Positions 3,620-50,809 of a stretch of 64,000 bases of DNA are shown one piece after another. The notes beneath the pieces are model-generated. The model ran no database searches, had not been told where the DNA came from, and saw only the letters and a program-made list of their open reading frames with translations. Made by a program: the position numbers and the translations under genes. Position 1 is the first letter of the stretch; each line of letters begins with the position of its first letter. The stretch lies in sequence record MN871444.1; one strand, written 5' to 3'.

Positions 3620-3667
3620 CGGCATAGGAGGAGGCTTGCGCCTCCTCCATTTATGTTGTCTTTTTTT
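3618..3667. terminator. Bidirectional terminator between convergent genes, with AACGGCATA / TTTATGTTGTC flanks
   Basis: GGAGGAGGC-TTGC-GCCTCCTCC stem at 3627-3648. Confidence 0.75.
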
Positions 3668-4478
3668 ATTTTGGGAAAAAGCCAATCACTTCACGGACCT
3701 TTTCCCTGGACTTGGCCCCGATACTACGTTGTACCTGGATAACTTCGAATTCCATGCCTTTATATACTTCACGGGTTCCAACGGTATCTGACCCGGATAC
3801 AATGACTTTATGACCTTCATTGGATAGTTGAAGCATACACGACATAAGTTGTTCGTGCTCTCGATAATTGAATCCCTTGGATTCATAATTCGTGAAATTC
3901 GAAGTGGGATTCCACGGAACGTACGGGGGGTCACAATAAATGGTGCTCCCCTGTGGGAATGTTTGTTCTGTCAAAATAGAATCAAACGCACCACATAAAA
4001 ACCGGGTATCTGTTCTACGTATTTTATCGTGCATTTCTAATACTGCGGCTTTGGGGTAAAGCGGTTTGGTTCTACGGCCAAACGGAACATTAATTTCATT
4101 TCGACGGTTATACCGGCATAACCCATTAAAGCCGTGTCGGTTTAAATACATGAACATGGCGGATTGAACAACCTTATCTTCGGTACGGGCATTGAACTTA
4201 TCTTTAGTTTCCAGGTAAGTGTCAAGATTATTACCGGTGGCAAATAAAGGTTCGGCGCACGCCAGTAAATCATGCGGGTTCTCGTCGACAGTTTCATAGA
4301 AAGCGATTAAATCTTTATTGATGTCGGCTAGAATATAACTTGGATAATCCGTATTAAGAAATACCGCGGCACTCCCCACGAAAGGTTCTACCAGACAGGA
4401 CACCTCACCAAAGTGGGGTTTTAATGCATGGACTATTTTGCTTTTACCGCCAGGCCATAATAACGGGGCTGTTTTCAT
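3666..4478 (-). CDS. dam: DNA adenine methyltransferase (Dam family)
   Basis: WPGGKSK, EPFVGSAAVF, ADINKDLI, YLNRHGFNGLCRYN and DPPY motifs. Confidence 0.93.
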   Translation of the reverse strand: MKTAPLLWPGGKSKIVHALKPHFGEVSCLVEPFVGSAAVFLNTDYPSYILADINKDLIAFYETVDENPHDLLACAEPLFATGNNLDTYLETKDKFNARTEDKVVQSAMFMYLNRHGFNGLCRYNRRNEINVPFGRRTKPLYPKAAVLEMHDKIRRTDTRFLCGAFDSILTEQTFPQGSTIYCDPPYVPWNPTSNFTNYESKGFNYREHEQLMSCMLQLSNEGHKVIVSGSDTVGTREVYKGMEFEVIQVQRSIGAKSREKVREVIGFFPK

Positions 4479-4504
4479 TCTATCATCCTAATATTTTTAA
4501 GGAA

Positions 4505-4512
4505 TATATTAC
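4505..4512 (+). promoter_or_regulatory. TATATTAC phiKZ-type early promoter motif
   Basis: Exact match to the phiKZ early promoter consensus, in an intergenic region before a + strand block. Confidence 0.6.
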
Positions 4513-4559
4513 TTTGGTGAATGTACTATATACGATCCATCTATTGAGGGTAAAATAAA

Positions 4560-5138
4560 ATGACTGCAACTAAAGTATTTGACGATATTTATCTGGTTCG
4601 GGACTATAATGAATTTGTGGCATTAGCTGAACAATTAAGCGTACATGTCGCATATCACCGGAATACTAATATAAGTGGGTACCCGGCGTTGGTAGATACC
4701 CGCGGTACCTGGGAAATCAAATCTCTCGGTGACGTAGTTGCAACACAAAACGTAGACGCCGAACCTGCTCCAAACAACATTCAAACCACCACCGTAGTAT
4801 TGGAGGTAGGCGGGGGCTTGTTAGAAGGGGGGCGTTTGTTAACGCAAGCACTTCCGGCCGGACACCATGTTGTTGGGGTTGACATAACCGGGGTTGCTTC
4901 CGTGGGGGTTCCAACCAAACTTCCGATCAAGTGTCTTATCACAACAGAAAACGAAGGTACTGCGGTGATGTCAGCAGTACGTGATATTCCGTGTGAAGAC
5001 GGTGATTTCATGCCATTGTGGTTTAAGGCCACTTATGCCAACGGTCGGTTCAAAGCAGCCAAACTCATGCATAGCGATTCTAATGGGCATACATTCCGTT
5101 CCGTTACGCTGGCCATCCACACCTATAAGCCGTTTTAA
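4560..5138 (+). CDS. Hypothetical protein
   Basis: ORF with GAGGG RBS after a promoter motif. Confidence 0.6.
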   Translation: MTATKVFDDIYLVRDYNEFVALAEQLSVHVAYHRNTNISGYPALVDTRGTWEIKSLGDVVATQNVDAEPAPNNIQTTTVVLEVGGGLLEGGRLLTQALPAGHHVVGVDITGVASVGVPTKLPIKCLITTENEGTAVMSAVRDIPCEDGDFMPLWFKATYANGRFKAAKLMHSDSNGHTFRSVTLAIHTYKPF

Positions 5139-5173
5139 CTGACAGCTCATCCCATAAACCTAGGACAATTATC

Positions 5174-6400
5174 ATGACCACCAAATCCAAATTCAGTCGA
5201 TTTCTGATGCGCTCTATTTCCTGCGGTATCACTAACCAGCTCGGCAATAAAGTTTTATACCGCATCAATCTCAAAATCGACCTCGCAGATTTATTTCTGG
5301 AGTCCATCCCCGACGATAATTTGCGTGAGGTATGTAAATGTACCCGCTGCTTAGATAACTTACGTCAGTGGGGTAATACGGCGTATTTTGATGAAAGCCG
5401 TGGTACGTATAACAGTGTCTTCTTCGATTACACCGGGGATTACGCTGTGTCCATGGATCTGCCCGATGATGAATTCTGGCCCTTTGTTAAAACGCTGCAC
5501 AAACTACTAAACGACGACCCTGAAGTGACTGAGGTCATAGCTGCCCAGGTCGGCAGTAAGCCCACTTTAAATAACGTTGGGTATGAGCATTTTCACATTA
5601 AACCAACGGATGGTTGGAAAGACTGCGTACGGCGCCCGGATATGCCCCGTGTATTGAACATTCAATCGCGGTGGTTTAGTAAGTGGGGTAATAATGACTC
5701 ACTCATCCGAGAAGCTTCTGATGTGGTGGTCAAGGTAACTGACGAGCTGAAAAAACGCCCGGATATGCAAACAGCCGCTGCCCGTCTTTTGCGGCAATTT
5801 ACTGGGTTTGAATCTATTTGGCGTAACCAGCAATTCGTCCGCACCAAAGCCATGTCCGATGGTTCGGATTCGATGATGCTCCCGGTCAGGTATGCATTAC
5901 ATTACACCTATACTGAACATCGTTCACCCTACATTCTCAGTATTTTGGATTCTCTTTATTCAGACCCCGAGAGTAAATATCGTGAAGGCTTGGTTGAGCG
6001 GACAGTAAACCGGATTTTAATGGATGTTGAAGCCGACAAAGCTAAAAATACCAAGGAACATATTGCCCGTCATCAGGCCATGTTTGATAAATGGGTGGCA
6101 TGGTCATTGGAGGCTAAATTGTTGACCTCATCACCGAATAGCTTCGCTAAGTTAATTACCATCATGGTCGACCTTGATTCCATAGAAGCAGAATCTTTGC
6201 TGTTGGTTCGAGAGGCGTTTGATGGTTTCGAGATCGGCGAGATTGAAACCATGCCGGATTCGCTCCGTAACTCCGTTGCAATTCGATGGATGTTGAGTGA
6301 AAACTATTTAAGTTCAACATTTAAACCTGGATTGCAGCCGGCGTTTACTTTAACTGAAACAGGGATTCTTGCAAAACACCTGCTAGCCTCTAAGAAATAA
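5174..6400 (+). CDS. Hypothetical protein with CxCxxC motif, paralog of the next gene
   Basis: CKCTRCLDNLRQWG...SVFFD resembles HTCNTCAGFFRKYG...SVLWD in the next gene. Confidence 0.6.
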   Translation: MTTKSKFSRFLMRSISCGITNQLGNKVLYRINLKIDLADLFLESIPDDNLREVCKCTRCLDNLRQWGNTAYFDESRGTYNSVFFDYTGDYAVSMDLPDDEFWPFVKTLHKLLNDDPEVTEVIAAQVGSKPTLNNVGYEHFHIKPTDGWKDCVRRPDMPRVLNIQSRWFSKWGNNDSLIREASDVVVKVTDELKKRPDMQTAAARLLRQFTGFESIWRNQQFVRTKAMSDGSDSMMLPVRYALHYTYTEHRSPYILSILDSLYSDPESKYREGLVERTVNRILMDVEADKAKNTKEHIARHQAMFDKWVAWSLEAKLLTSSPNSFAKLITIMVDLDSIEAESLLLVREAFDGFEIGEIETMPDSLRNSVAIRWMLSENYLSSTFKPGLQPAFTLTETGILAKHLLASKK

Positions 6401-11257: not shown

Positions 11258-12019
11258 ATGGGTCGTCAAAAAGCTAAGGCTAATGCTCGTCGTCGCGACA
11301 ACAATGTGGTACATCTTGGGGCACCATTCAATCACCCCGGAGATGCGCTGTTGGAACAAACTCTGGGTACGAAAGAACGACGTAATGATAGCCCTCTGGA
11401 AGCGCGTAATGAGAACCAGCAACTCTTTCTGGATCTCCTGGCTGAAAAAGACCTCGTATTTGCATCGGGCAGCGCTGGCTGCGGTAAAACATATCTGTCG
11501 GCGTCCTGGGCTGCTGAGCGCCTGAAAGCAAAAGAAATCGACCGTATCATCGTAACGCGCCCGGTATTACAGTCTGGCGAAGACCTGGGTTTCTTACCGG
11601 GAACTATTCACGAAAAATTCCTGCCGTTCTTCCGGCCAGTCTACGACGTACTGCGGGAACGTTTGGGTGCTTCTTTCCTGGAATACTGTCTGAAGCCTGA
11701 AGTGGGTAAAGTTGAGATTGCGCCATTCGCGTATATGCGCGGGCGCAACTTCGATCGTGCCGTCGTGCTGTTGGATGAAGCACAAAACGCCACTGCCTCC
11801 CACATGAAGATGTTTCTCACCCGCATCGGTGAAGATACTCAGGTTATTGTCTCTGGTGACCATAACCAAATTGATTTGCCTAGCCACGTAAAATCTGGTC
11901 TGGTCGATGCACTGAGTCGTTTCAAAGACGGCCCACTGGTGGGCCGGGTCTCTTTCCTGGATACGGACTGTGTGCGTTCTGTACTGTGTTCTGAAGCACT
12001 ACTGGCGTACAAAGACTAA
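11258..12019 (+). CDS. phoH: PhoH-family ATPase
   Basis: GSAGCGKT Walker A, RIIVTRP, LGFLPG, AYMRGR, LDEAQN, FLTRIG, GDHNQID. Confidence 0.95.
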   Translation: MGRQKAKANARRRDNNVVHLGAPFNHPGDALLEQTLGTKERRNDSPLEARNENQQLFLDLLAEKDLVFASGSAGCGKTYLSASWAAERLKAKEIDRIIVTRPVLQSGEDLGFLPGTIHEKFLPFFRPVYDVLRERLGASFLEYCLKPEVGKVEIAPFAYMRGRNFDRAVVLLDEAQNATASHMKMFLTRIGEDTQVIVSGDHNQIDLPSHVKSGLVDALSRFKDGPLVGRVSFLDTDCVRSVLCSEALLAYKD

Positions 12020-35166: not shown

Positions 35167-35513
35167 ATCCGGCGGGGTGCAGGGTATAATTTCGTATAAC
35201 AGATCTAAAAGGGTAAACCTATAACGTGGTTATTTTTATAAAAATAAAACGTTATGGCTTTTTCAATCCTGGGAGAGCTTTTGCTCTCCCATTTATTTTG
35301 TCTTCCCTAAGTCATAAAAAAATACTTCGCTTATATATAGAGTGAGCCGCTATGCGAGCGAACGATAAAGACCCTTAGAAATAAGGCCGTTATCCGAAAA
35401 CACCCAAAGGGTTTTCGGGGGAAAGGGGGTTTAAGAAATTGGGAAGGGAAAGGATTGTTAAGGAAAGGGGAACCTTTTTGATCGTATTTATTCATTGAGG
35501 GGGGTAATACGCC

Positions 35514-42865: not shown

Positions 42866-42952
42866 AAAAATACTGAGCTACCCTATTGTTTAGTAGGTCC
42901 CAGGAAAACAGTACTCATGCGTAGTGCACCATTTTTATCCCCTAAACTTATT

Positions 42953-42980
42953 TGCCTCTCCTTCGGGAGAGGCTTTTTTT
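42953..42980 (+). terminator. Intrinsic terminator GCCTCTCC-TTCG-GGAGAGGC-T8
   Basis: Classic stem-loop plus U-tract. Confidence 0.85.
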
Positions 42981-43049
42981 TCGCCTTTTTATTTTTTTAC
43001 TTCACACATACATCCTGTACTAGATAACGAATAAATAGGATTGTGAAAC

Positions 43050-46790: not shown

Positions 46791-48677
46791 ATGGGTATTA
46801 ATGACGCTCGCAATACTGGTAACAACGACGCAGCTCAAGAACGTGCGCAGTCTGCAGCTCCGCAGTTCGACGAATCTCAAGTACGCCAGGCAGCTCCGCA
46901 TCGCAAAACCATTACCGGTAAAGGCGGTGTGAACGCACTCCTGTCCCGTCGCCTGAACCGCGTGGGCGGTAACGAAGACATCAGCAAAATCGCTGAAATG
47001 ATGCGCAGCTATCTGCGCAGCCAGCTGGACGAAGGTTACGTTCCGACGTTCGTTATTGTCGATGGCGTGACTTACGAACTGGCGGTATCTGCAATCGTTC
47101 CGTCCGTGATGCTGACTGCTCGCGGTGTTAAAACGGTGCTGGCCTATCCGATTCTGGTAGAGCCGCGCGACCGTTCCATGGACACTGTCCGTACCGTTCG
47201 TGAAGCTGGCCGTGAACTGTCACTGCCGGTAGTAACCTCCGATTTCTACGACGCGCGTACCGAAGAGCAGATCCGTAACGCTATCGTTCGTCAGTTCGGT
47301 CTGAACGCAGCAGATAGCGATATCAAACTGGTCGGTTACTGCACCCTGCCGGTAGAAGTATCTTCCGACGACAAAGGCGAAATCGAAGACCTGGCCGCCA
47401 ACGTATTCTCGGCGCTGGAATCCTGGGTTCGCGAACAACCGGGCTCCGAAGAGCCGCGTTTCAACCTGGCAGAAATCGACAACACCCAAACTCGCTTCAC
47501 CGGCAAACTGGACTTCTCTCCGGCGCCGATCAAAACCCTGACCGGCCTGCCGGTGCGTAACGACGTGACCATCACCACCAAAATGCGTGATATCACGGTC
47601 GACAGCCTGCACAGCCAATCCGGCGTTCTGTCCGAACTGAGCGGTTACGTGGACCTGATCTACGTTGACCCGCAGCCCGAACAAAACCCGTACACCCGTC
47701 AGATGTATCTGAACCCGGCGTGCTATCTCCCGAACTTCGTGATTTCGCATCAGGAAATTCTGGTTAACGCCGTGACCCCTGAACTGGTCCTGTTCGGCCT
47801 GGCATCTGCACGTCTGATGCAACAGCCGAACAACGCATTCTACAATGCGTTCAAACCGCGCCATGGCGTCAAAAACGATACCCGTGATATCGGGGCTATC
47901 GGTTACGAGTTCGATCCGACTGGCGAAGGCAAAGGTCCGAAAGCGCCTATCGATACCGCAGATTCCACCTTCAACCTGCAGACTCTTCTGAGCACTGCAT
48001 TCCGCCCGGGCCTGCTGTACAGCCTGGACGTGGTAGATGGCGGTGAGTATTCCTGGGTATACGAAGCGCTGCTGTACGCTGCTAACGGCGATGCCGCGGC
48101 AGAAAACGATGTGATTCAGTATGCAGATAACCTGACCAACGGTCATTTCCGTCAGCTGTGGAACCCGGTCGAAAACCGCGTTGCGGTAGACTCCGGCGAC
48201 CTGATTCCGATCGGTTACTACATCGATCCGGAAGGCCAACGTAAAGACCTGCGCGATATCGACTATCTGGCACTGCTGAACATGTTCGGTGGCAGTGATG
48301 CGGAACTGGTTTACCGCTGGTCCGAAACCTTCGGTAACCCGAACCAATCTCCGCAGCAACGTCTGGATGCACGTGTACGTATCCTGAAATCGCTGCTGAG
48401 CAACAACCTGTTCATCAAACGTATCGCACATCGCATCACCCTGACCCCGACCTTCATCGACGTGCTGGCCACTGCCATCTCCAAAGCGGGCATCACGATC
48501 GTTCCGGAAACGGTGTTCAGCGAACAGCAGACCTATACCCGTGGGTCTACCACCCTGGCTAACTACGCTCTGACCGGCGGTCAGTCTCCGCTGTTTGCAG
48601 GTATGCAGCAGCAGACCGTTGCCGGTTACAACACCGTATACCAGCCGCGTGGCGCAGGCAGCCGTTTCGGCGGCTAA
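46791..48677 (+). CDS. chmA: Chimallin, phage nuclear shell protein
   Basis: 628 aa; extreme optimal-codon bias; directly upstream of nvRNAP beta'-N as with phiKZ gp54; low-complexity termini; ELSGYVDLIY motif. Confidence 0.85.
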   Translation: MGINDARNTGNNDAAQERAQSAAPQFDESQVRQAAPHRKTITGKGGVNALLSRRLNRVGGNEDISKIAEMMRSYLRSQLDEGYVPTFVIVDGVTYELAVSAIVPSVMLTARGVKTVLAYPILVEPRDRSMDTVRTVREAGRELSLPVVTSDFYDARTEEQIRNAIVRQFGLNAADSDIKLVGYCTLPVEVSSDDKGEIEDLAANVFSALESWVREQPGSEEPRFNLAEIDNTQTRFTGKLDFSPAPIKTLTGLPVRNDVTITTKMRDITVDSLHSQSGVLSELSGYVDLIYVDPQPEQNPYTRQMYLNPACYLPNFVISHQEILVNAVTPELVLFGLASARLMQQPNNAFYNAFKPRHGVKNDTRDIGAIGYEFDPTGEGKGPKAPIDTADSTFNLQTLLSTAFRPGLLYSLDVVDGGEYSWVYEALLYAANGDAAAENDVIQYADNLTNGHFRQLWNPVENRVAVDSGDLIPIGYYIDPEGQRKDLRDIDYLALLNMFGGSDAELVYRWSETFGNPNQSPQQRLDARVRILKSLLSNNLFIKRIAHRITLTPTFIDVLATAISKAGITIVPETVFSEQQTYTRGSTTLANYALTGGQSPLFAGMQQQTVAGYNTVYQPRGAGSRFGG

Positions 48678-48770: not shown

Positions 48771-50090
48771 ATGGAAATAAAAGAATTCATTCCTACGAAA
48801 CGTGCCCCGTATGGGTATGCGATTTCGACGGGATGTGATATCTATTATGACCCCAGGAGGAAAGGTGTTTATCCGGAAATAGCGAATCACGAAGCGACAT
48901 TAGCGCGGTTACGTGGTACCCCTATTTTCATTAACGATATCGACACCTCTACAGCCGAAGGTCAAGATAAACTTGATTCTCTTCTATACACCAAATACGA
49001 CGGCGGGAGCATCAGTATCCTCCCTAGTTGTGAATGTGGGGAAACAACTACTGTATCCAAACTGAATACCTATTGTCCTAACTGCTCCACGATCGTAGTG
49101 CCACCGTCTGAGCGCCCAATAGAATCGAATCTCTGGATTCGAGCGCCGGATGGGGTAAAGGCATTAATCAATCCCCAAATGCTTATCATTTTGTCGAAAG
49201 CATTTACCATTAATGGCTGTAACTTCCTGGAATGGTTGTTAAACCCCACGTATAAAAATGGGACTCACAACAACCTAAAGTTAGAACTCTTCAAAGCGTA
49301 TAACTTTCCGCGCGGCATCAATGCTTTCTATGATAACTTTGATGACATAGTCACTGCGTTATTGGACCGTTCCATTTTCAATGGCAACAACGCCAAGCGC
49401 TTAGAAGTGAAGCTGTTTATCGAACAAAATAGAGACAGGGTGTTTACTCGGTACATCCCAATACCGAACCGCATTTTGTTCATCACGGAAAAAGCAATCA
49501 CCGCAACATATGCCGACAAACACATGGCCTCGGCACTTGATGCAGTACGCACTATTTCCGATCTTAACCAACACATGGAACCTCCATCGATCCGTAGGCG
49601 TGAATATGCTGCAGCAAAAGCCTGTCTGCAATTAGCGTCGTATTACGTGATGCAATATAAGAAGATCATCGGCGGCAAATATGGGTTCTTGCGAAAACAC
49701 CTGTTTGGTACCAGACAGGCGTATAGCTTCCGGGCAGTTATCAGTAGTCTGCACGAAGCCCATCGCATGGATGAACTTCATATCCCGTGGGGGGTGGCGG
49801 TAGGGGTATTCAGGAAACATCTGGAGAGCAAATTGCTGAGGCGGGGGTATACTCCGAACGAGGCGGTAAAACTATTATTCGATCATACTCTGACCTATCA
49901 CCCGCTGCTGGATACGTTGTTCAAAGAAATTATTGGTGACCATCCTTCCGGGAAAGGGTTTCCATGCTATTTCTTACGAAATCCAACGCTGGATAGATTG
50001 TCGGGTCAACTATTCCACATTACGTTAGTCAAACCAGATCCAAACATCAAAACGGTGAGTCTATCACTAAACGTCATCGCGCCAATGAAT
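48771..50090 (+). CDS. nvRNAP beta' N-terminal subunit, exon 1 (440 aa, ends ...IAPMN)
   Basis: Zn-ribbon CECG..CPNC, GFLRKHLFG, FRAVIS, LRNPTL; position matches phiKZ gp55. Confidence 0.85.
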
Positions 50091-50569
50091 AAACTTGCGT
50101 GGGTTGATTCACGCATGTTCCTTCCAGTAGAAATACTGGTCGAACACTCTCCTAACTGCTGGGAACTCCTGTTAAAAATACTTCTACCAACTTAAGCTGG
50201 AAACAGACTTGAGGGCTAGGCTTGAACCCTAGGTATGGTGAAAATGAAGTAGTTGGGACGATCAAGCAACGAAGCTCCTACCGGCGCAAGCCCACGGAGT
50301 GAGTCCAACGACTATCGAAAACTACATCGGTTAACCGACTAATGACATTCGTATAAAGTCGAATGGTTGCGTAAGCAATTAAAGTGAGTAGAGTAGGGCC
50401 AAGTGGTGTGAGGCATGGCAATAAGTCCTCCCTAGCAATTGATGCTAGCCGAAACGGAGAGCACCTGACCGGGTAAAGCCGAAGGTGATGAGATAGTCTT
50501 GTATCCGACTGTAATGGTCGGGAAGTTCTAAGAGAACTGCGTAGCCTAACGACCTACGTGAAAGTAACG
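50091..50569 (+). mobile_element. Group I self-splicing intron, 479 nt, no homing endonuclease ORF
   Basis: Removal restores N-ADFDGD in frame; exon ends in T and intron ends in G; P3 CTCTCC/GGAGAG, P7 GACTA/TAGTC, P8 CACCT/AGGTG, plus P and Q core elements and P9 hairpins. Confidence 0.9.
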
Positions 50570-50809
50570 GCTGATTTTGACGGTGACGCCTTGGGTGGAT
50601 TACTCATACTCGATAAAAAGATGTATGAGCGTTTTGAACGAACTTCCCAACATACCGGGGTTCTTGATCTGCAAAAAGCCAGAACACTATCCGGTAAAAT
50701 AACTTTACCGAAGCCCGTACTGGCGATTTATGCAAGTTGGATGCATGAACCACCGGCTGATGTAGAAGAAGCTAAGCTGTTCAAGAAATTGTTAGGGCAG
50801 CATGATTAA
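50570..50809 (+). CDS. nvRNAP beta' N-terminal subunit, exon 2 (ADFDGDALGG...; spliced product 519 aa)
   Basis: Carries the catalytic DFDGD; in frame with exon 1 after splicing. Confidence 0.88.
   Translation, partial: ADFDGDALGGLLILDKKMYERFERTSQHTGVLDLQKARTLSGKITLPKPVLAIYASWMHEPPADVEEAKLFKKLLGQHD

Follow-up and report, generated by a model that had tools for sequence, protein, structure and literature searches.

In the DNA analysed here, a window of 64,000 nucleotides corresponding to bases 186001-250000 of the record for 'Serratia phage KpGz_1' (MN871444.1), positions 50091-50569 are very probably a functional group I intron that lacks an endonuclease gene and, as judged from its sequence, is orthologous to the intron in gp55 of phage phiKZ. 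It interrupts the gene for the non-virion RNA polymerase's (nvRNAP's) N-terminal beta′ subunit, directly 3′ of the gene for chimallin, and is a new example of an already known intron type. The record lists Klebsiella pneumoniae as the host, is flagged UNVERIFIED_ORG, and carries no annotation. Coordinates are those of the window, and all features of the locus are on its + strand.

The limits of the insertion are set by the gene itself. Exon 1 (48771-50090; 440 codons, ending ...APMN) closes with ATG-AAT, and exon 2 (50570-50809; 79 codons and a stop, starting ADFDGDALGG) opens with GCT-GAT-TTT-GAC-GGT-GAC. The PHROG 2987 (RNA polymerase beta subunit) profile is contiguous over the junction, with exon 1 covering positions 2-416 (E 7.7e-130) and exon 2 positions 417-476. 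The gene is uninterrupted in Klebsiella phage Eowyn and in phage KpHz_2 (88.7 % exon identity), where the sequence at this point is ...GCGCCAATGAAT/GCTGATTTTGACGG (a slash marks a point of insertion here and below). The insertion is therefore exactly 50091-50569 (479 nt), with neither end ambiguous, and its excision yields the intronless-allele sequence exactly and restores the frame. The joined exons encode a protein of 519 aa, 99.2 % identical to that of Eowyn, which would read ...VIAPMNADFDGDALGG... across the junction. Its best solved relative is phiKZ gp55 (PDB 7OGP_A, E 3e-91), and it is to this chain (PHIKZ055) that exon 1 is matched. With the intron left in place, the open reading frame (ORF) runs from 48771 to 50195, through a tail of 34 intron-encoded codons and a stop (50091-50195) in which the residues PNCWELL are the translated P3-P5 core. 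Gene callers accordingly give two ORFs here, of 474 aa and, from a GTG start, of 83 aa (50558-50809). A preliminary description of the window, made from its letters alone, had placed an ORF-less intron inside the catalytic motif N/ADFDGD. The intronless alleles and the continuity of the PHROG profile agree with that placement, translation confirms the claim that unspliced RNA would give a 474-aa protein without the catalytic aspartate triad, the longest stop-free run in the sense direction is 34 codons, and the exon ends, the terminal G, and the coordinates given for P3, P7, P8, and P9 all hold on re-checking.

Within these limits, a complete group I core could be located. The Rfam model RF00028 (Intron_gpI) aligns over its entire length (1-253), with 40.2 bits and E-values of 1.2e-8 locally and 8.5e-7 for the whole window; the match exceeds chance, though at a sub-gathering score. 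In this alignment P3, P4, P5, P6, P7, and P8, the P3/P7 pseudoknot, J6/7, and J8/7 are all placed. P1 is formed by the exon bases GAAU with the first intron base A (50087-50091), paired with UGUUC (50116-50120). Within it, GAAU pairs with the internal guide sequence GUUC (50117-50120), so that U50090, the U of the 5′ splice site, stands opposite G50117 as a U-G wobble. The guide is GUUCC in six relatives and GUUUC in a seventh (locus L109). Between the two strands of P1 there is an extension hairpin (50096-50115), UGCGUG pairing with CACGCA around a loop of 8 nt; this loop is a variable place, holding an HNH ORF in phiKZ and in the metagenomic locus L114. The P2 hairpin, CCAGUA-GAAA-UACUGG, is at 50124-50139. 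P3 is made by CUCUCC (50147-50152) with GGAGAG (50456-50461), and the P4-P5-P6 domain (50157-50303) has a branched P5 extension (P5a, P5b with a GAAA loop, and P5c) and P6/P6a. P7 extends to 7 bp, GACUAUC (50310-50316, with the J6/7 bases CCAAC before it) pairing with GAUAGUC (50492-50498, with the J8/7 bases before it), where the pairing previously noted had been GACUA (50310-50314) with UAGUC (50494-50498). P8 occupies 50462-50487 (50462-50466 with 50483-50487). The P9 region (50505-50559) consists of P9 at 50505-50521 (50505-50510 with 50516-50521), P9.1 at 50524-50538, and P9.2 at 50539-50559, and the terminal G of the 3′ splice site is at 50569, the 3′ end GUGAAAGUAACG/ being conserved in the family.

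The extension between P7 and P3′ described previously as about 140 nt measures 139 nt (50317-50455). In the minimum free energy fold it contains hairpins at 50327-50338, 50346-50365, 50366-50379, 50395-50429, and 50432-50448, three of which stay paired in locus L024, and it stands at the place of P7.1/P7.2. By their position, these helices look like those of subgroup IA. The subgroup IA phage introns (T4 td, nrdB, and sunY, and those of SPO1 and Twort) form a class of Michel and Westhof with extra helices between P7 and P3′ and multiple P9 hairpins. Features of the subgroup classes have been listed (PMC3984707). Like the subgroup IA introns, that of KpGz_1 has extra helices and several P9 hairpins and interrupts a gene of nucleic-acid metabolism in a virulent phage; it differs in that its extension, with 139 nt and five hairpins, exceeds the usual P7.1/P7.2. 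Compared with shuffled sequences, the sense strand folds better (z = -3.2), which is not clearly so for the antisense strand (z = -1.6). A 10-bp long-range pairing of 50097-50106 with 50550-50559, present in the minimum free energy fold, was dropped, since its 5′ partner is not conserved and the local P9.2 hairpin covaries.

Support for this structure comes from a family of related introns. A distant-mode blastn search of 50,697 phage records found a similar intron in KpGz_1 itself only, exact core patterns in IMG/VR found just unrelated introns with 20-40 nt of core in common, a 24-mer from P3′-P8 had no match in JGI metagenome contigs, and a related-locus search with one protein as the query had no match. 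The relatives were obtained through homologous proteins and their contigs. The intron sequence of KpGz_1 recurs in an independent assembly (L025, 99 % identical) and in more than 20 public runs. Other introns at the same AAT/GCN site are 72 % (L024 intron 1), 65 % (L108), 58 % (L109), and 53 % (L110 intron 1) identical, and there are also those of phiKZ and of L111 (5′ part only). Among the differences between the copies, a T>C change in L025 is within the loop of the P1 extension hairpin, an 11-nt insertion, CCCCAAAAGAG (L025:4563-4573; also in run X29), lies between 50332 and 50333 in the loop of hairpin 50327-50338 and sets apart intron variants of phages that are otherwise 99 % identical, and the changes in L024 preserve pairing in the peripheral hairpins 50346-50365, 50366-50379, and 50432-50448.

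Compensatory changes are found in P1, P2, P3, P5c, P6, P8, P9, and P9.2 when the family is compared. In P1, the exon pairing GAAU with GUUC is replaced in L109 by AAAU with GUUU, P2 exists in five distinct and fully paired versions (all six pairs with compensatory change), and P3 occurs as CUCUCC with GGAGAG, CUCCUC with GGGGAG, and UCUCUC with GGGAGA. P4 and P7 are invariant among seven family members, including the GACUA and UAGUC strands of P7. With a plain alignment, RNAalifold recovered two of the peripheral hairpins besides P2, P9, and P9.2, and found compensatory change in 20 of 49 pairs. Formal pair counts were made for the 3′ domain, from P3′ to the terminal G, and a covariance model of this domain found 25 related introns in the collected loci. 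In their alignment, which leans towards structure because it was fitted to the model, 95 % of cells are paired as against 68 % when shuffled and 30-40 % for slid partners, and 22 of 24 pairs change on both sides, including all four pairs of P8. For the P9 hairpins, 90-100 % of cells are paired and 16 of 17 pairs are compensatory. The model gives the phiKZ intron 78 bits, phiKZ being one of its training sequences. It also has four separate matches within 1.5 kb at positions 1421-2860 of locus L023 (IMG/VR 3300028914_000218), where several group I introns may be clustered in a single gene. On this comparative evidence the group I fold of 50091-50569 is considered established, and catalysis and in vivo splicing are inferred.

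The preliminary description had noted that phiKZ gp55 is split by an intron. This is correct and was understated, since the phiKZ intron, which includes the HNH gene gp56, occupies the identical AAT/GCT site and belongs to the same family. The end of exon 1 in phiKZ reads GCGCCTAAT and the beginning of exon 2 reads GCTGATTTTGACGGCGAT, and the intron (L107:1369-2740; 1372 nt) has the limits AAT/...ACG/GCTGATTTTGAC; the insertion point is therefore the same as in KpGz_1, between the N and A codons. The genes also correspond in position: the upstream neighbour in KpGz_1 encodes the phage nuclear shell protein chimallin (46791-48677; Pfam PF25677, E 1.3e-41; PHROG 4795), and the order of chimallin and polymerase genes matches phiKZ gp54-gp55. 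Both introns are followed by GCT GAT TTT GAC, they share the guide GUUCC, and P3-P4 (CUCUAAUUGCUGGGA), J6/7-P7, J8/7, P9.2, and the 3′ end are alignable. In Rfam, the ribozyme core of phiKZ reaches 75.6 bits, and it is ~57 % identical to that of KpGz_1 over the aligned core columns. What differs is the phage host, Pseudomonas rather than Klebsiella, the P5 and P7-P3′ extensions, which are larger in KpGz_1, and the P1 region. The phiKZ intron carries the 334-aa HNH_3/NUMOD endonuclease ORF, gp56, in the P1 loop, downstream of the 5′ splice site and ahead of the guide sequence. At that place the ORF-free KpGz_1 intron has a hairpin of 20 nt; this loop is of 8 nt in KpGz_1 and ~100 nt in L024 and L109, and contains an HNH ORF in L114. 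In the solved structure of the phiKZ polymerase (PDB 7OGP), chain A consists of PHIKZ055 and PHIKZ056.1 in one chain and reads LKAPNADFDGDQLN. In the native phiKZ nvRNAP, gp55 is of 56 kDa (PMC4666361), which would match the joined product (~500 aa) and not the annotated ORF of 420 aa, and gp55 has been counted among the intron-containing genes of phiKZ (PMC11512511). Judged by host gene, site, and alignable core, which all agree, the KpGz_1 intron is an endonuclease-free orthologue of the phiKZ gp55 intron.

In the proposed mechanism, the primary transcript of the early gene for the N-terminal part of nvRNAP beta′ would fold into the P3-P9 ribozyme core, and GUUC (50117-50120) would pair with the exon-end GAAU, with U50090 facing G50117. 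The first attack, after U50090, would be made by an external guanosine bound in P7, and the released 3′-OH of exon 1 would then attack after G50569. AAU would thereby be joined to GCU, giving ...APMN-ADFDGD... and the 519-aa catalytic subunit, and active nvRNAP would be made from spliced RNA only. Intact expression of the gene must be assumed, because the catalytic aspartates are in this subunit and KpGz_1 was obtained as an isolate on K. pneumoniae.

As for its evolutionary status, the intron most likely represents a selfish passenger that has reached the phase of the homing cycle without an ORF. It would have been retained because only an exact deletion would leave the invariant NADFDGD intact, and immunity to endonucleases that recognize only the uninterrupted site would be a by-product. 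No endonuclease was found with it. There is no Pfam match in the 47-aa antisense ORF of the intron or in the read-through tail, and a search of the intron and of the long P1 loops of its relatives for traces of four HNH proteins from related introns gave noise only. Likewise, six-frame ORFs of at least 50 aa from the 269-kb KpGz_1 genome include no relative of these four HNH proteins, other nuclease families being outside this search, and the family profile found no second copy of the intron in the whole genome beyond 50091-50569.

Several results weigh against a functional intron of this kind. The RF00028 score is under the gathering threshold of 50 bits, at which the window has no match; the scores of relatives at this site or close to it range from 44.3 to 75.7 bits, and the low score of KpGz_1 stems from ~240 nt of inserted sequence in P5 and in the P7-P3′ interval. 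Pairing in P10 amounts to only 2 bp and is weak. No spliced KpGz_1 junction was recovered from the four public runs examined, which include a true metatranscriptome (X18), and in a long-read transcriptome study of phiKZ the predicted phiKZ introns gave no spliced reads under its conditions (PMC10914365). Finally, the reading as a neutral passenger is argued from the absence of an endonuclease, for which the search was one for relatives of four HNH ORFs.

A rival reading is that the locus is not spliced at all, and is a split gene with two polypeptides (474 aa and 83 aa), a pseudogene, or an assembly artefact. The two ORFs given by gene callers and the lack of a spliced junction in the public RNA runs examined are in its favour. 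However, the ribozyme core is complete and shows covariation, the N would be cut off from ADFDGD within a single invariant motif, the sequence repeats in independent assemblies and runs, and the orthologous phiKZ product is a single chain (7OGP_A). This explanation is therefore extremely unlikely.

Many public runs contain the gene and the intron at near-identity, and three of the four examined show other arrangements at the junction. In run X18, 50089 and 50570 are linked through a C in a contig of 151 nt (AAC for AAT), which differs from KpGz_1 at one position in the 114 nt upstream and at five in the 36 nt downstream. This joint, the only one found, was rejected as a spliced KpGz_1 message: with C instead of U at -1 and five downstream differences, it is best read as the intronless allele of a relative. 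The pattern suggests a mosaic intronless allele, with a base changed where group I splicing needs U. Run X29 contains 50115-50580 at 99 % identity, in a tandem arrangement: to its right a second intron begins after GCTGATTTTGAT, as in L024, and to its left there is a different P1 loop; for these reasons the same intron in another gene was dropped as an explanation. In run X9, from a near-identical phage, the sequence continues after AAT (50090) with GCTGACTTAACGCAAAAGCGTCAAGG... and re-enters at 50551, the last 19 nt of the intron, which represents either another version of the intron at this site or one inserted at an adjoining position. Close relatives thus differ in whether they have the intron, in its P1 loop, and in whether a second intron is present.

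Such polymorphism is also what would be seen if the intron were still mobile through an endonuclease encoded elsewhere, by a free-standing gene or a neighbouring intron, that cuts the empty site. Trans (collaborative) homing of this type is recorded for ORF-less or defunct introns of T4-like phages and cyanophages (PMC3984707, PMC2790892), for example T4 nrdB with mobE and the cyanophage psbA and T7-like DNA polymerase introns (PMC2790892, PMC3984707). Like these, the KpGz_1 intron is without a working endonuclease, is located at the conserved catalytic site of an essential phage gene, is polymorphic in relatives, and disrupts a potential nuclease target, and near-identical phages are in addition polymorphic for the second intron at ADFD/GD (X29; L024). 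In the recorded systems, however, a free-standing endonuclease gene adjoins the intron-bearing gene, and cleavage of the empty site by its product has been demonstrated. The genes flanking the KpGz_1 intron have the order and sizes found in intronless Eowyn, so that no free-standing nuclease gene adjoins the locus, and, in the search described above, the four HNH ORFs from introns had no relative elsewhere in the genome. Nor is there a co-conversion tract when KpGz_1 is compared with intronless relatives such as Eowyn: there are two differences in 60 nt upstream and seven in 60 nt downstream, as against ~7 per 60 nt gene-wide. Trans homing is therefore considered quite unlikely here, and the selfish passenger is preferred.

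The motif that holds the intron is a frequent site of insertion. Occupancy was assessed in 119 clusters of proteins homologous to the product of 48771-50192, as protein-level breaks, some of which may be contig ends; an alignment search for related loci keyed on the NADFDGD pattern is biased to uninterrupted genes and was left out of the counts. In 63 clusters the protein runs through the motif, and in 56 (~47 %) it stops in or just before the motif or at an invariant RN/P 36 residues upstream. These breaks are at N/ (9), NA/ (2), NAD/ (20), NADFDG/ (15), NADFDGD/ (1), and RN/ (5), with 4 unclear. The read-through tails often hold ...SLN.SNCWELL..., the translated P3-P5 ribozyme core, which offers a simple protein-level flag for such introns.

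At the DNA level, junctions were checked in 12 loci. The insertion is at N/A in eight loci, at A/P in LucasX, after the first base of the F/Y codon in L113, at D/G in L024 (intron 2), at G/D in pEa_SNUABM_54 (with an HNH ORF) and L110 (intron 2), at D/Q in PS119XW, and at RN/P in L114 (with an HNH ORF). The -1 base was U in all 14 junctions inspected, and a G ends the intron at every junction. Tandem group I introns within the NADFDGD codons are present in L024 (3173-4156; Logan ERR13636776 contig), separated by a 12-nt mini-exon, GCAGATTTTGAT (ADFD), and in L110 (3758-4483; ENA ERZ15185919 contig), separated by a 15-nt mini-exon, GCGGATTTCGACGGT (ADFDG). The two introns of L024 are alike in the 3′ domain (74 bits with the model), and the first intron of the tandem in run X29 is 99 % identical to that of KpGz_1. 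In L114 (Logan SRR30309627 contig), the HNH-ORF intron at RN/P (3647-5462) is followed from 5565 onwards by a second intron at N/A, with another HNH/NUMOD ORF positioned as in phiKZ. In L113 (JGI 3300056809 contig), from a metagenomic chimallivirus, a Tad2-like gene (PF11195; 4399-4695) is just downstream of the intron-split nvRNAP gene.

These observations bear on the suggestion, which goes back to the immunity proposed in the preliminary description, that the ORF-less intron is kept by selection, since breaking an HNH recognition site would protect the nvRNAP gene from co-infecting chimalliviruses. It is a general property of homing introns that the intron disrupts the homing site and makes the allele immune to the cognate endonuclease (PMC3984707). 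HNH-bearing introns exist at the same AAT/GCN site (phiKZ and L114), and the motif is heavily colonized, with breaks in 56 of 119 clusters, at six or more positions, some of them in tandem 12-15 nt apart. Eowyn and KpHz_2 share with the joined KpGz_1 exons an identical stretch of 26 bp spanning the site, 12 bp of it upstream and 14 bp downstream, and would therefore be targets. The preliminary description had also noted that intron endonucleases of nucleus-forming phages cut RNA polymerase genes of co-infecting relatives. This stands for PhiPA3 and phiKZ, between which intron endonucleases serve as weapons (PMC11620839), but the target in the case of PhiPA3 is a virion RNA polymerase gene and not the site occupied in KpGz_1 (PMC11620839, PMC12908238). 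The PhiPA3 gp210 intron resembles that of KpGz_1 in belonging to group I and in interrupting an RNA polymerase gene in a nucleus-forming phage, and such introns count in the competition of co-infecting chimalliviruses (Birkholz et al. 2024, PMC11620839). It differs in being in the gene for the beta subunit of the virion polymerase, rather than nvRNAP beta′, and in that an active HNH endonuclease is the agent of the effect.

Against selected immunity, no endonuclease is known for the KpGz_1 site, and none was found in KpGz_1, in the search based on the four HNH proteins, or in the published Klebsiella chimalliviruses among the matches listed, none of which has the gene interrupted. Any insertion would confer immunity, so selection is not demonstrated by it, and purely selfish homing into conserved sites also predicts high occupancy. 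Selection for immunity is accordingly unlikely. The broader proposal, that the 27-nt (A)PNADFDGD(A/Q) stretch of chimallivirus nvRNAP beta′ genes is an arms-race hot spot, where repeated and independent insertions are favoured as destroying the targets of polymerase-directed endonucleases and the KpGz_1 intron would be a retained shield rather than a spent parasite, is also unlikely, and a selfish passenger with incidental immunity is preferred.

The intron could instead be a checkpoint, as the preliminary description had suggested, with the rate of splicing timing or gating the production of nvRNAP and hence middle and late transcription. The catalytic subunit is obtainable from spliced RNA only, and nucleus-forming phages separate transcription from translation (PMC12908238). 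In T4, intron splicing reacts to translation and growth state, according to work cited in PMC10914365. However, the intronless close relatives and the 63 uninterrupted clusters mean that no conserved regulatory need is apparent, and there is no sign of a sensor in the sequence. A regulatory role is very unlikely, which again leaves the selfish passenger.

Elsewhere in the window, three sub-threshold Rfam matches were seen. Positions 11818-12013 on the - strand match Ysr251 (Yersinia sRNA 251) over its full length, with 35 bits against a gathering score of 100 (window E 1.6e-5). The matches to suhB/mmgR (42912-42988, + strand; 29 bits, E 0.055) and to part of CrcZ (35198-35308, + strand; 25 bits, E 0.013) are weak and probably due to chance. 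No Rfam family reaches its gathering score in the whole 269-kb KpGz_1 genome, and hence there are no tRNA genes by that test.

In KpGz_1, then, an essential gene is split by gene callers in an unannotated record, and its catalytic subunit is recognizable only after removal of the intron. The breaks in nearly half of the clusters, together with introns with and without HNH ORFs at adjoining positions, suggest that group I introns are a major feature of the RNA polymerase genes of nucleus-forming phages. KpGz_1, with the intron, and KpHz_2/Eowyn, without it, are a naturally occurring pair whose aligned 7.6-kb locus is ~86 % identical in nucleotide sequence. KpGz_1 and KpHz_2 are recorded on the same host species, and the pair is suited to testing an ORF-less intron for mobility, neutrality, or a protective effect. 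Such a comparison would carry the work on interference competition between PhiPA3 and phiKZ to an intron without an endonuclease.

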